From sequence record NC_070950.1: a stretch of 64,000 bases of DNA; one strand, 5' to 3'. Under the pieces are notes generated by a model. That model was not told the origin of the DNA and did no database searches. It saw only the letters and a program-made list of their open reading frames with translations. Positions 34,271-39,046 of the stretch are shown in pieces. The first letter of the stretch is position 1. Each line of letters begins with the position of its first letter. Position numbers and translations under genes: made by a program.

Positions 34271-35410
34271 TGAGTTTCGGGACTGGAGAAATTTCCGTCT
34301 CGATAAAAATTCAACTGAGAATTTTTACTCTGGGGTTTTCGGCGGTTATAATATTTCACTGCGGGAATTTAAAAACTCAACGGGTTTACGATCCCGTATG
34401 TTTTTGAGTTTTATTTCCCGTATAAAATACTCCGTGCCGTAAGACAACACCCCACAGAAAAAACCTCGCCTCCGGAAAAAATTCCTCGAAGGCGAGTTGC
34501 CATGATCTCACTCGAGCAAGAATCAATCCGACATACAATCCCAAGTGCTCCGATTTTTTTCTTCGGAATTTTGGTCGTTGGTAAATTTTTACATACAAAT
34601 CTATTTTATATTTGTATTTTTCGCGTGCGCGGATATTCTAAATTTTCAAAGATAATCTAAAACCGATTCCGGTTCTGGGTTTTTATTTTTTCTGTGTTTT
34701 GATTTTCCAAATCCAATTTTCAAAAATCTAAATCTAAAAAATCTAAAATTTTAATACTCAAAAATCCAATTTTCCTAGGGGTCCTTATTACGCGTGCGTA
34801 CGCCCGCACGCATATAAAAAATAAATATAATACGTAGTATTATATTTTCATTTGGTTTTATATTTTTAATTTATTAAAAATATATTAATATAAATTATTA
34901 TAAATATTTTTATTAGTTTGTTTTTATAAAATATATATAAATATATATTTATATATATTTATATTCATTAGGCGCGCGCCAGCGCGTGTGTGCATGTGCG
35001 TGCGCGCACGCGTAATAGAGAAGGGGTTATAAAAATACAAGATTGACCCTGAGAGATTATCCAGAAAAAATCACACAGAGTAAAAATATTAACCGGAATG
35101 ATTTTGAGAAGATTTAATACTCAACCTAGGAATTCGTATCAGTCGGATGAAAAAACGTTTTAGAAATCGATACAGGAATTTTTAGAGGGTATCCCGATCG
35201 AGTTCTCAGGAAAGATTATTCGGAGAATAAAAATATTTTAATCAAGATAATTAATTTTTACGGTAAGTTAGATTTATCGAGACGAGAAGATTTAATCACA
35301 AAGTAATTTCTTACGGAGTAAATAATCTTCTGAACAGGACCGAGATCTCGAATAGCCAGATGGAAATTATCCATCCATTCGAAAGTTAACCTGAATTATC
35401 CCTAAGAGGC
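34271..35410. other. Long non-coding AT-rich region, candidate replication origin or packaging signal
   Basis: No credible ORF; near-pure AT core at about 34813-34969; flanking inverted repeats; 13-bp direct repeat GAGAAGATTTAAT at 35106 and 35284; A-tract repeats. Confidence 0.45.
34786..35017. repeat. Inverted repeat arms flanking the AT core
   Basis: TATTACGCGTGCG (34786-34798) / CGCACGCGTAATA (35005-35017), plus CGCACGCA (34805-34812) / TGCGTGCG (34997-35004). Confidence 0.9.
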
Positions 35411-35418
35411 GATATCCT

Positions 35419-36153
35419 ATGCAACCAGCTAACCCATGGAAAAACAACAAGCACGTTAAATCACAAGACTCAGCAAGTGTTGATCGTTACGAATCCCTGT
35501 TACAAGAATTACCTGATGCGTTGAATGCAACCCCTCGAGATCCCGGATATCTTATAGCGACTAAAAAGATTTTATTAGTCCTGGAAATGTCTGAAGGAAC
35601 CCGACTGACCGTTCGCAACGTGATGGAAAATCCAGACATGATTCGTAAGGTCCACGAGTTGCTGGTGGAGTTAGGCTGGAAGCAAGCGATTAGCCGAGGG
35701 ACTCAGGTTTTCGTCACTCACCAGGATTTAATTAAACCGAGTATCTACCGCTTAATCGACCTCGACGCTAATGGGATTGGTTACGCTAACGAACTGCTGA
35801 ATAATATTTTATTAGACCGTCGGTTCAGTGCTCGGGTAGACAATAACGATATTCGAATCCTCCCAGGAGACCGCAGCGCAAGTAACCCCTTTAGCCTGCT
35901 GTCGTCTAACGTCGTCAGTGGTTGGCGTAAAGCCATACGGGATTACGACAAAAACGTGACGGGTAATCTTATTGGACACATGACGGTTGTCGGCGAAGAC
36001 AATACGAATATCCCGCTTGATTTAAAACTGGTTTTCGCTCTGCTGGATTACATCGGGTGGCCAGAAATGTATTTTACTGGCGAACAGATTTTATTGAGTA
36101 ACCCCATTGGGGATTATCAGACCCTTGAGGTGAATTTCATCGACCCTGAGTAA
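35419..36153 (+). CDS. Hypothetical protein
   Basis: 244 aa, SD GAGG. Confidence 0.75.
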   Translation: MQPANPWKNNKHVKSQDSASVDRYESLLQELPDALNATPRDPGYLIATKKILLVLEMSEGTRLTVRNVMENPDMIRKVHELLVELGWKQAISRGTQVFVTHQDLIKPSIYRLIDLDANGIGYANELLNNILLDRRFSARVDNNDIRILPGDRSASNPFSLLSSNVVSGWRKAIRDYDKNVTGNLIGHMTVVGEDNTNIPLDLKLVFALLDYIGWPEMYFTGEQILLSNPIGDYQTLEVNFIDPE

Positions 36154-36403
36154 TTCCTAACGACAGAGTGATGTTATTAGTAAAGATCTTTGGACTCCCT
36201 GTTGATTAACTAGCGACCCAACCTCATCTCTTTGAACCTCCTTACCACGAGCGAGATAGCCAAAGTAGCTAGAGATTTTCAGGGGGTTCAATCCCCATTA
36301 TTCGTTAATCTTATTAGACCCATTGTCCTTAGCCATGTAGCGACGGCCATTCTCCTGTGACAGACAAGTTTTTGTTCAATGGGATAGATTAACGTTTTTC
36401 TTC

Positions 36404-36477
36404 ACGTCGTGTTATCTGATGAGTCTTCGACGCTAAACAAGACGAAACCTAATGAATCTATTTTATTAGGTCATAAT
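36404..36477 (+). ncRNA. Type I hammerhead ribozyme, predicted cleavage after C36472 (GUC)
   Basis: Stem I GTTAT/ATAAT; CTGATGA 36416-36422; stem II GTCTT/AAGAC; GAAA 36444-36447; stem III CCTAATGAA/TTTATTAGG; TC. Loop II CGACG is complementary to upstream CGTCG. Confidence 0.9.
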
Positions 36478-37120
36478 TCAACCTAAGCGTTGAACGGGCA
36501 GTTAGGGGCAATGGTCCCCGAGGTCTTCAGCTTCTTCGCCTGCCCGCACTAAAAAAGTTCTTTCATGATTAGGAGTGCCGCACTCTACGAGCGGACAATA
36601 AGCAACCGAAAGTGGGAGAGAAAGAAGCGTGTCTGGTCGCTTGCCGGAAAGTTGGTTCAGGCGGGTTTCTTCCCAACCCAAACGACGCTGCCCAAGATAG
36701 GGCTGCAAGTCGTATTAGCGAATTATACCGGTATGCGGGGTTTCCGCGATAAACCGGGTTAGCTACGGGTAAGAAACCGGCCGGAGTAATCAGCCTTTCG
36801 TATTCGGGTAACGTGAGTTATTGTAGAGATATCTCTGAGGGTTAGGCCAACCCCCGACGTTCTCCGAGTCCGAAGGGAAGCTTGCTCAGCTTCGTAGGAA
36901 CTCCAAAATCTCAGACGGTCACACCTCGCAATCTTACGGCAGTATGATTGCCTATTCGTCCTTTGTCGCTCACCAAGGGGCGAGTAGGAAACCTCTGCCA
37001 CGGCGTTTCGTTTGCCTTTTACCATTGCTTTTGTTATAACCTCTCTGTTTGAGTTGAGTGTTAACTTCCCCAAGAGTATAACCTGTTATCTCTCTCTTCG
37101 TGAGGAGTCGGAGATAATGG
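36473..37120 (+). ncRNA. Candidate large structured non-coding RNA
   Basis: Dense series of complementary stems, no ORF with a credible start, begins at the predicted hammerhead cleavage site. Confidence 0.55.
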
Positions 37121-37143
37121 GGTAAATTCTTAGGAGGTTCGTT

Positions 37144-37332
37144 ATGTACACATACCAGTATACCGTGCGATACCGAATACCTAATTCTGTGTTTACGACT
37201 TACAGCGGAGAAATTACTTCTGACTGTTTGCTCACTAACGCTAATCGCATCTTTGACGTTTTGCGCACTGAGGTTCATAAAGCTACTAACGTTAACTCGT
37301 TTAGCATTACGAACTTTAAGCTGAAAGAATAA
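37144..37332 (+). CDS. Small hypothetical protein (62 aa)
   Basis: Strong SD AGGAGG; embedded in the structured region. Confidence 0.65.
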   Translation: MYTYQYTVRYRIPNSVFTTYSGEITSDCLLTNANRIFDVLRTEVHKATNVNSFSITNFKLKE

Positions 37333-37500
37333 GTCGAGCTACGCGCTCAACCTACCTTAGGGCCGGAAGTAGTTACGACTTAGGGGGAAAGAAGAGTCGT
37401 GCCTTTAAGTACCCCAACCCCATTCGTGTGGTGATCTTTCACATCATCCCATGAATATCGCCACATCATCATTAAAGTTCTACCATGAATTTTTATTCCT

Positions 37501-37532
37501 TCCAGTAGGGTTCGGCCCTACTGGACTTTTTT
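37501..37532 (+). terminator. Intrinsic terminator closing the ncRNA-rich unit
   Basis: TCCAGTAGGG-TTCGG-CCCTACTGGA followed by a T run. Confidence 0.85.
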
Positions 37533-37663
37533 CGCGTTTTTTAAATCGGCAGTTGTTTAATTATGTCAGAACTAGATTTTTTCAGTTCTAAATTATTACA
37601 ATGTAAAGCAAAAGATAATGCTTTCCATTCCAACTATCATAATTTCTTTTAGGAGCTAGATCA

Positions 37664-38626
37664 ATGAGTACATTACGTGTTTACGCGTGCGGCGGTACTG
37701 GTATTAATATTGCGTCTAAATGGATTGCCACCGGTGCGAATACGCTTATTCGTAAAGCCCAGTTCATTGGACTGGATAGCAGTGAAAACAACAAACCGTA
37801 TAACGACGCCTTTAAGGTCGAACGTCCTGAAGGAACTCGTGGCGGTGGCAAAGAACGTAAGCTGATCGGTAAAATCGCTGCTGGGTTTATTGACAGTATT
37901 TTGACCAAACATAAACCGGGCGATTTCAACCTGATCATCATGAACGCGGCTGGCGCTACCGGGAGTACATTCGGCCCGACTCTGATCAACCGTCTTCTCT
38001 CTCAGGGCGTTCCGGTCATTGCGCTGGTCGTAGGCGACCTGACTTCTGAACTGGAAAACTACAACACGGTTAAAACGTTTGAAAGCTTGGACAACCAGCG
38101 CATCAATCTGAACGTACCGGTTATCATCGACTACGTGGACAACGCCAAATATCCCAGCCGCGGGTTGGCTGACAAATATGCCATCGGCCGTCTTGATATC
38201 CTGAGCCTGTTCTTAACCGACGAACATGAAGAAAGCGATTTCCAAGACATCCGGAACCTGTTCTATTACAACCAGGTTACCAAGGCGGCGCCTACTCTTG
38301 CTCGTATCGACTTCTTGACCGATACTCAGTTAGACAACGTTACTCCGGGGCTGGTTGCTGAATTTGGTTTGTATCGTAAAGCGGACGATATCGGCAGCCA
38401 TATTAAAAATCTGGCATACCGTTCGACCGGCGTTATTCAGGAAGGCAGCACTAACTTCCCAGCTGGAATAGAACATCTCCACATGGTCTTTGATCATGAT
38501 GCGACGATCAAAGATATCCTGGTTCTGGTTCAGGATCTTAAAGATATCGAGATCCAAAATAACGAACGTTTTAAATCTGCCCAGCAGGTTGGAAACGGCG
38601 GCGATGATTCTGGAATGTCCTACTAA
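37664..38626 (+). CDS. phuZ: Tubulin-like spindle protein PhuZ
   Basis: CGGTGINI (T1), GGGKER, AGATGS (T4 variant), C-tail DDSGMSY; 320 aa; SD AGGAG. Confidence 0.88.
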   Translation: MSTLRVYACGGTGINIASKWIATGANTLIRKAQFIGLDSSENNKPYNDAFKVERPEGTRGGGKERKLIGKIAAGFIDSILTKHKPGDFNLIIMNAAGATGSTFGPTLINRLLSQGVPVIALVVGDLTSELENYNTVKTFESLDNQRINLNVPVIIDYVDNAKYPSRGLADKYAIGRLDILSLFLTDEHEESDFQDIRNLFYYNQVTKAAPTLARIDFLTDTQLDNVTPGLVAEFGLYRKADDIGSHIKNLAYRSTGVIQEGSTNFPAGIEHLHMVFDHDATIKDILVLVQDLKDIEIQNNERFKSAQQVGNGGDDSGMSY

Positions 38627-38634
38627 GTAAAACA

Positions 38635-38684
38635 ATACTGCTACAGCCCTTCTATGGGGCTGTAGCAGTAGTTCTTTATTTTTT
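38635..38684 (+). terminator. Intrinsic terminator
   Basis: TACTGCTACAGCCC-TTCTATG-GGGCTGTAGCAGTA then a T-rich tail. Confidence 0.8.
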
Positions 38685-38740
38685 GCATCTATCTATAGGT
38701 CTAATTAAAAAGTCGCTTATAAACCTTTACAGGAAGCTTT

Positions 38741-39046
38741 ATGATAAAAACAACCAGAGTGGTTAAAACGTTGAGTTTTCGCGAATATCATTCTGTGATA
38801 CTTAATGTCGATAGTAACGTTGCTACAGCAGAAAGGTTGCTCCTCAAGGAGGCTTTAATCGAACACGGTTATCAGATCGACGACGGGTTACCCGAGAGCT
38901 ATCCTTATTATCCAGAATCACTAAGGGAATTCAGAGATATGTTGAAGACCAGTATCGGACACATGACTTTGGGAATTCCCACAAACGCCAAGGTCGAATA
39001 CATCAGCCCTACACTTGGACTCTTTAATATCATTTTTACTTACTAA
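38741..39046 (+). CDS. Hypothetical protein
   Basis: 101 aa, SD AGGA. Confidence 0.65.
   Translation: MIKTTRVVKTLSFREYHSVILNVDSNVATAERLLLKEALIEHGYQIDDGLPESYPYYPESLREFRDMLKTSIGHMTLGIPTNAKVEYISPTLGLFNIIFTY

Follow-up and report, generated by a model that had tools for sequence, protein, structure and literature searches.

Bacteria and phages have few large structured RNAs under strong sequence constraint, and those discovered to date have all led to unusual biology. The RNA biology of nucleus-forming jumbo phages, including export, translation, and competition with the host, is barely charted, and to our knowledge a large structured RNA has never been described in them. A synthetic ribozyme insulator is an engineered part, about 75 nt long, in which a hammerhead and a hairpin are placed ahead of a message. 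Natural hammerheads were found in intergenic positions of phage and prophage transcripts, and division of long transcripts into defined units was suggested as their role (Perreault et al. 2011, PMC3088659). In the haloviruses HF1 and HF2, a hammerhead shortly before a gene matches the position of a mapped 5' end (PMC3088659). For phage phiKZ, Putzeys et al. 2024 (PMC10914365), citing Gerovac et al. 2021, describe short noncoding RNAs (ncRNAs) arising from 5' untranslated regions (UTRs) by premature termination, one of these leader-derived ncRNAs, of 196 nt, being situated in the gp40 leader.

Here, we analyze a 64-kb window, that is, the whole stretch of DNA under study, to which all positions refer. 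It matches Klebsiella phage Miami (MT701590, genus Miamivirus), a nucleus-forming jumbo phage, at 100% identity, record position 222150 corresponding to window position 36150. A gap of about 990 nt, with gp267 (35419-36153, plus strand) on one side and a 62-aa ORF (ORF62; 37144-37332, plus strand) on the other, hosts a hammerhead ribozyme followed by a large structured RNA. We consider it probable that a highly structured leader RNA of ORF62, delimited by the hammerhead and representing a new family, has its body at positions 36473 to 37143.

The hammerhead ribozyme and its genomic setting

The following features define the 5' part of the module and its downstream neighbor:

36190-36291, plus strand: leader hairpin of about 100 nt, with a 13-nt C/U-rich box (36236-36248) in its apical loop
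36411-36477, plus strand: type I hammerhead ribozyme, recognized from sequence and alignment
36411-36415 paired with 36473-36477, plus strand: hammerhead stem I
36416-36422, plus strand: hammerhead core CUGAUGA
36423-36427 paired with 36439-36443, plus strand: hammerhead stem II
36444-36446, plus strand: hammerhead GAA
36447-36453 paired with 36465-36471, plus strand: hammerhead stem III
36472, plus strand: hammerhead C17
36472/36473, plus strand: self-cleavage site predicted from the hammerhead geometry
37664-38626: phuZ (tubulin gene), 3' of the 62-aa ORF

Relatives were obtained through neighboring proteins. Comparison with related phages by BLASTn, advised in a preliminary description of this DNA, was of limited use, as DNA searches returned near-identical phages only, and it was the protein neighbors that led to further lineages. 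The contigs L007 and L008 were reached through PhuZ homologs (PhuZ 74% and 49% identical, respectively), L011, which shares its sequencing run with L007, through a gp267 homolog, and L042, L043, and L044 (PhuZ 47% identical) as well as L045 with a small-ORF profile. L042, L043, and L044 belong to three sister NCBI assemblies (GCA_013565735.1, GCA_013558375.1, and GCA_013565755.1) with contig numbers above 11 million. In the phage database, only seven Miami-group records matched, by DNA or by the small ORF, and JGI metagenomes contributed one more Miami-like genome. IMG/VR, searched with three DNA patterns, the box-plus-core pattern, PhuZ, an ORF62 profile, and a PhuZ profile, contained two module-less Vibrio phages as the only relatives; 20 matches to the box-plus-core pattern in this database were without a hammerhead and unrelated. 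The hammerhead pattern was absent from GTDB genomes, where six core-pattern matches, the number expected by chance, included no ribozyme, and blastn against 5,426 E. coli genomes and 72,556 plasmids gave no match. The DNA preceding phuZ in Vibrio phage Aphrodite1, Photobacterium phage PDCC-1, and Erwinia phage RisingSun showed no similarity, hammerhead, or box. RisingSun, Aphrodite1, and PDCC-1 possess gaps of 500 to 1300 nt before phuZ (L006 4675-6000; L004 5503-6000; L005 5363-6000), the RisingSun gap carrying small minus-strand ORF calls. Some segments of these gaps fold well, with z-scores down to -5.6, and the local folding scores are ambiguous.

The order hammerhead, RNA, small ORF, and phuZ is complete in Miami, L008, and L042. 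L011 and L007 jointly provide both ends of this order, and the L045 contig begins within the RNA and shows the RNA and the ORF only. Wherever a contig reaches that far, phuZ comes next after the RNA, the ORF, a 3' UTR, and a terminator. The unit of ribozyme, RNA, small ORF, and terminator ahead of phuZ, as it was originally delineated, is conserved as a unit, with ribozyme, RNA, ORF, and phuZ all present in three lineages.

The surroundings of the module show some peculiarities of their own. Within the Miami group, gp267 has about 81% nucleotide identity, with 36 to 41 of 244 residues and 33 to 47% of four-fold degenerate sites changed, and it evolves far faster than its neighbors, the adjoining RNA being about 98% identical. 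No family match was found for gp267, and its fast change could be due to recombination or diversifying selection. Upstream of gp267, the region 34650-35400 between divergent genes, previously labeled origin-like, is strongly AT-rich (GC 0.21 to 0.36). A perfect 15-bp hairpin located 3' of phuZ (38636-38670) attains terminator scores on either strand and is also the source of spurious weak Rfam matches (mir-55, PyrR, and tmRNA).

The hammerhead is the sole site of its kind within the 64-kb window. Since stem I is the open one, stems II and III being capped by loops, it is of type I, and an open stem I also means that nearly all of the ribozyme would be left on the upstream product. The layout of core and stems puts the predicted cut between C36472 and A36473, in line with the start of the downstream RNA proposed before. 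Judged from this geometry, cleavage would yield an upstream RNA with a 2',3'-cyclic phosphate end and a downstream RNA with a 5'-OH start.

Comparison between lineages corroborates that the hammerhead is genuine and conserved. The catalytic core (CUGANGA ... GAAA) is intact in all ten hammerhead copies, and the lone core substitution in the family affects position 7, which is free to vary. The nucleotide at the cleavage site is C, or A in L042, and never G. When the 17 pairs were scored in seven sequences from four lineages, 98.3% of the cells were paired, versus 17 to 52% with the partners slid. Six pairs, spread over all three stems, were altered on both sides, which was equaled in 0 of 500 shuffles. 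A covariance model built on six hammerhead copies then detected the copy of the fourth lineage, L042 (50 bits, E 2e-11). The best Rfam match of the Miami ribozyme is Hammerhead_3, with a score of 23.7 bits (24.8 bits for L011), which lies below the gathering threshold of 48.5 and in this respect weakens the proposal of a ribozyme-delimited leader. This match mis-pairs the outer stems because the Rfam model has a different permutation.

Upstream of the ribozyme, Miami, L011, and L008 have exactly the same C/U-rich box. In each of these three, a long hairpin is predicted to present it unpaired at the tip, the counterparts being situated at about 1461-1563 in L011 and about 429-522 in L008, and the stem sequences differ between lineages. 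In Miami, 36234-36242 is complementary over 9 nt to the Shine-Dalgarno sequence of ORF62, and the box may resemble the ribosomal anti-Shine-Dalgarno sequence. After cleavage, the box-bearing hairpin would reside on the upstream product. Inspection by eye did not reveal the box upstream of the ribozyme in L042; in L045, a similar CACCUCCUU lies inside the RNA (L045:77-85). A promoter function of the box was rejected because it occurs only once in the window, and another promoter candidate, TTATTA(C/G), lacked a positional pattern; no promoter of the unit was located, which counts against the proposed leader transcript.

Conservation, strandedness, and helices of the structured RNA

Downstream of the predicted cut, the following elements were distinguished:

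36473-37143 (671 nt), plus strand: large structured RNA, also the 5' leader of ORF62, delimited by conservation, plus-strand pairing, and homologs
36477-36494, plus strand: P1, first hairpin after the predicted cut, with same-place hairpins of unrelated sequence in L008 and L042
36632-36648, plus strand: hairpin Pa, with the invariant motif AAGUUG directly after it, up to 36654, in Miami, L008, L042, and L045
36716-36765, plus strand: nested helices Pb, Pc, and Pd, with pair changes in Pc and Pd
36839-36893, plus strand: GGGUU/AACCC hairpin (36839-36853) and GAAGCU/AGCUUC hairpin (36877-36893), in a block 97% identical in L007
36928-36988, plus strand: hairpins Ph and Pi, with same-size hairpins in the same places in L007
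37011-37052, plus strand: hypervariable patch with a 9-nt indel, 52 to 62% identity within an RNA about 98% identical (Miami group)
37082-37121, plus strand: hairpin Pz, last helix, 22 to 43 nt ahead of the start codon

The preliminary description had placed a structured RNA at 36473-37120. Its 5' limit agrees with our analysis, and its 3' limit has to be moved, as the conserved noncoding stretch ends at 37143. The Miami segment 36473-37120 has a minimum free energy (MFE) of -229 kcal/mol (z-score, -3.9; 0 of 20 shuffles as low), and z-scores in relatives are -5.0 for L008, -4.6 for the part available in L007, and -3.2 for L042. The GC content of 0.50 to 0.53, compared with 0.21 to 0.43 in adjacent intergenic DNA, bears out the GC enrichment noticed initially. 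Key hairpins of differing sequence are shared by up to five lineages. Among the complete lineages, the RNA measures 671 nt in Miami, 522 nt in L042, and 351 nt in L008; the two remaining copies are partial, the family is thus small, and the helix map across these five lineages is partly hand-made. MAFFT mis-registered short hairpins between lineages, and pairs were therefore counted by script from coordinates.

Conservation of the RNA exceeds that of its surroundings. The core (36473-37010) is 97.6 to 98.0% identical among the seven Miami-group sequences. The RNA diverges by 2.0 to 2.4% within this group, compared with 8 to 47% at four-fold degenerate sites of the neighboring genes, with differences of 8 to 12% for ORF62 and 10 to 26% for phuZ. 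The spacer before phuZ is 83 to 85% identical.

The substitutions in the Miami group follow the pairing of the plus-strand RNA. Of the variable pairs in the RNAalifold structure, 16 are kept and 4 are broken on the plus strand; with the same pairs read as the minus strand, 2 are kept and 18 are broken, and slid controls keep 2 to 7. Structures of single-sequence MFE predictions, made without covariation information, behave similarly, with 13 to 18 pairs kept and 7 to 9 broken on the plus strand and 3 to 9 kept and 11 to 18 broken on the minus strand. Only 21 of the 52 variable columns fall in paired columns, though 65% of all columns are paired.

The sequences of all ten stems originally listed are present in their assigned places, and eight stems are comparatively supported. 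P1, GCGG/CCGC within the CCGG helix, GGGTT/AACCC, GAAGC/GCTTC, GCAATC/GATTGC, and TTATCTC/GAGATAA are backed by conservation or compensatory change, and CGGGCAG/CTGCCCG, CCGC/GCGG, and ACGAC/GTCGT are invariant and found in the Miami group only. One stem, TGGGA..GAAA/TTTC..TCCCA around AAGCG/CGCTT, is contradicted; it clashes with hairpin Pa, the loop of which is CGCTT and which is kept in four lineages.

The stems of Pa differ between these four lineages yet are fully canonical, and among Miami-group members a U.G pair changes to C-G. Pd consists of 4 bp and a GGNUU loop of 5 nt, and in L008 three of its pairs are swapped with the loop size unchanged. In Pc, U-A is replaced by C-G in three of the seven Miami-group sequences; in L008, the GGU/ACC core of this helix is simply conserved. 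By inspection, the L042 and L044 counterparts of the GGGUU/AACCC and GAAGCU/AGCUUC hairpins carry compensatory changes, and within the L042 lineage a CCGG/CCGG hairpin changes to CCAA/UUGG. Ph has 6 bp and a GGCA-capped tip and encloses 12 nt, as does its L007 counterpart, and Pi is a long hairpin of 15 bp; their equivalents in L007 have other stem sequences, with every pair canonical. The lower stem of Pz and the AAUG after it are conserved in five lineages, and the upper stem is different in each and still canonical. A long terminal hairpin of L008 was considered as a counterpart of Pi and ruled out, since L042 shows its correspondence to Pz. The hypervariable patch is predicted to engage in long-range pairing with a variable spot at 36572-36605, where changes are mostly from G-C to G.U.

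Known RNA families do not account for this segment. An Rfam search of the whole window produced no gathering-level match, and besides the sub-threshold hammerhead no family appeared at E<=10 in 35000-38800 or at E<=1 in L007, L008, and L011. GOLLD, ROOL, OLE, and HEARO, the large RNAs recommended for comparison at the outset, as well as raiA, gave no covariance-model match. tRNA and tmRNA were not found by ARAGORN, and in agreement with the reported lack of hallmarks, no tRNA, tmRNA, RNase P RNA, or group I or II intron was detected by ARAGORN or an Rfam model. A plus-strand 65-codon frame inside the RNA has no ribosome-binding site (RBS), consistent with the earlier view that no ORF here has a credible start, and its changes are mainly nonsynonymous. 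Full-text literature searches on jumbo-phage hammerheads, Chimalliviridae noncoding RNA, and phage Miami yielded no account of the RNA. Taken together, comparative sequence analysis makes it very likely that the structured RNA first noticed 3' of the hammerhead is real, conserved, encoded on the plus strand, and a member of a previously undescribed hammerhead-associated family outside Rfam.

ORF62 and possible roles of the RNA

The 3' part of the unit consists of the following elements:

37132-37137, plus strand: Shine-Dalgarno sequence of ORF62
37144-37332, plus strand: ORF62, encoding a 62-aa protein conserved across lineages
37333-37500, plus strand: structured 3' UTR, comprising a helix that is conserved and begins at the stop codon, and the invariant motif CCUUAGGNCCG
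37501-37533, plus strand: intrinsic terminator of the unit, with an 11-bp stem and then a T run, conserved in L007

ORF62 homologs have 62 to 67 aa, with 12 residues invariant among five homologs, and no match to ORF62 was found in Pfam or PHROG. The AlphaFold2 model (pLDDT 92.5) shows a beta-beta-alpha-beta fold. In the PDB, it best matches ribosomal protein LX/eL20 of archaea and eukaryotes (TM 0.6 to 0.72, rmsd 2.2 to 2.8 A), with weak E-values of 0.025 or worse. Because of these E-values and a net charge varying from +2 to -4 among homologs, we base no conclusion on RNA binding by ORF62. In the 3' UTR, the helix at the stop codon is followed by CCUUAGGNCCG and a second hairpin with G-rich and C-rich strands; the stop-codon helix displays one compensatory pair between L007 (432-560) and L008 (1127-1250).

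The terminator at 37501 is the only strong plus-strand terminator from the ribozyme to phuZ. The RNA had initially been regarded as a free-standing ncRNA released by the hammerhead. This notion is not upheld, as neither a terminator nor a second processing site was found between the RNA and ORF62 in any lineage, and in Miami no second ribozyme lies between 36473 and the ORF. The roles suggested along with it, as a scaffold, sponge, or decoy or in nucleus or spindle organization, gain no support from our data. Thus, in every lineage the RNA is physically the 5' leader of ORF62.

We propose that transcription would enter from upstream and that the hammerhead would fold and cut between C36472 and A36473, leaving a phage transcript of about 1.06 kb, of which the structured RNA would form the 5' two-thirds. 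The downstream RNA would have a clean 5'-OH start four nucleotides ahead of P1. The cut would separate the large RNA from the rapidly changing upstream sequence, and this uncoupling might enable the RNA to fold independently. Extrapolating from known 5'-end-dependent decay in enterobacteria, the 5'-OH end would be a poor substrate for decay that depends on a 5'-monophosphate. The RNA comprises a conserved core (P1, Pa with AAGUUG, Pb to Pd, Ph, Pi, and Pz) and expansions specific to lineages, Pz closes it right before the RBS of ORF62, and the structured 3' UTR and the terminator follow the ORF. The layout of a ribozyme and a hairpin fits an insulating role. By its fold, the RNA might act in cis on stability and translation of the ORF62 message. 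That such control or stabilization is the main job of the RNA, rather than a function of its own, is a tentative suggestion, to which we give slightly less than even credence. An additional, independent role of the RNA is conceivable, considering that its constraint exceeds that at ORF62 synonymous sites. Two observations sit uneasily with the leader interpretation. Constraint across 538 nt, including loops, exceeds what a simple stabilizing leader would need, and sequestration of the RBS, as expected for cis regulation, is predicted in each lineage but with differing partners (in Miami, 37063-37069 with 37133-37139).

A different, and in our judgment unlikely, explanation is that the RNA acts in trans as a free ncRNA, for instance as a scaffold, a decoy or sponge, or a ribonucleoprotein (RNP) with the ORF62 protein, its linkage to ORF62 reflecting mere cotranscription. 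Divergence is about four times lower in the RNA core than at ORF62 four-fold sites (about 2% versus 8 to 12%), and a core with lineage-specific expansions from 351 to 671 nt is the pattern of a large functional RNA. The resemblance of the ORF62 model to LX/eL20, an rRNA binder, would suit an RNP as well, but the fold matches are weak, the fold is small and common, and the L008 homolog is acidic (net charge -4, pI 4.7), unlike an RNA binder. The missing 3' processing signal or terminator ahead of the ORF in all lineages argues against release of the RNA, and no antisense target of the RNA or of its hypervariable patch rose above noise within the window.

Going further, the RNA could represent a new large-RNA class confined to one clade of nucleus-forming jumbo phages, ribozyme-processed, locked to the phuZ locus, and with a role of its own, such as an RNP scaffold, a new catalytic RNA, or a translation device with the RBS-complementary upstream loop. 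We regard this as distinctly unlikely.

It is quite improbable that the RNA is a riboswitch-like cis-regulator of ORF62 sensing a ligand or protein, or a second ribozyme of a new type. The same ORF is always downstream of the RNA, Pz is always situated 22 to 43 nt ahead of the start codon, and the RBS is predicted to be paired in Miami and L008. However, with 351 to 671 nt the RNA is far above the size of known riboswitches, Rfam contains no riboswitch or ribozyme match besides the hammerhead, and the pairing partners of the RBS are not conserved, the Miami pairing being weakened in six of seven Miami-group members.

GenBank annotates two minus-strand ORFs on the RNA:

36502-36708, minus strand: Miami gp268, judged spurious; no family match, not conserved in L007 and L008
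36759-37073, minus strand: Miami gp269, judged spurious; no family match, absent in L007 and L008

That these are real proteins and that folding of the RNA is incidental appears very improbable. Six of the seven Miami-group sequences retain the open 104-codon frame of gp269, which is not shifted by the 9-nt indel; at 97 to 98% identity, however, an uninterrupted frame of such length says little. A frameshift interrupts it in one Miami-group relative, its N-terminal part falls into the hypervariable patch, neither gp268 nor gp269 has a match in Pfam or PHROG, and the substitutions obey plus-strand RNA pairing. Minus-strand gene calls atop the RNA occur in relatives as well (L002 3420-3915 and L042 740-1297), and the hypothetical proteins called on this strand over the RNA are probably annotation artifacts.

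Finally, we give practically no weight to a DNA-level element conserved for protein binding, such as a replication origin or a packaging or partition site, for which strong nucleotide conservation beside the AT-rich region 34650-35400 might speak, since G.U-tolerant substitutions are strand-asymmetric, hairpins persist across lineages despite sequence change, and an intact hammerhead is always coupled on the same strand.

Comparison with known systems

The leader RNA proposed here is a well-delimited candidate, with a predicted exact 5' end, natural minimal (351 nt) and expanded (671 nt) versions, and a conserved partner ORF, and it is therefore directly usable in transcript mapping and structure work. 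Our analysis also corrects database annotation, as the RNA is overlain by minus-strand proteins in three records and one metagenome gene call. Even if it were merely a stabilizing leader, it would be a clear natural case of a ribozyme insulating a downstream RNA from its upstream context.

In its description, the Miami RNA resembles the phiKZ leader RNAs in being located in a leader in a nucleus-forming jumbo phage. The phiKZ gene gp40 is the one next to phuZ (gp39). Unlike the Miami RNA, the phiKZ leader RNAs are portrayed as short, derived from premature termination, and ribozyme-free.

The Miami ribozyme shares the catalytic core, the three-stem layout, and the intergenic place on a phage transcript with the hammerheads compiled previously (PMC3088659). 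It differs from these in occurring in an enterobacterial nucleus-forming jumbo phage and in preceding a structured RNA of 351 to 671 nt instead of a start codon. Like GOLLD, ROOL, OLE, HEARO, and raiA, the RNA spans hundreds of nucleotides, contains many helices, is strongly conserved, and belongs to a phage or mobile context; in contrast to these, it is found in another host group and only in a narrow clade, is predicted to be processed by a hammerhead, and is always fused to a small ORF. As in synthetic insulators, the hammerhead is predicted to strip variable upstream RNA and to provide a fixed first nucleotide with a hairpin following at once. Unlike those engineered parts, the Miami module is natural and conserved, and it stands before a very large fold.
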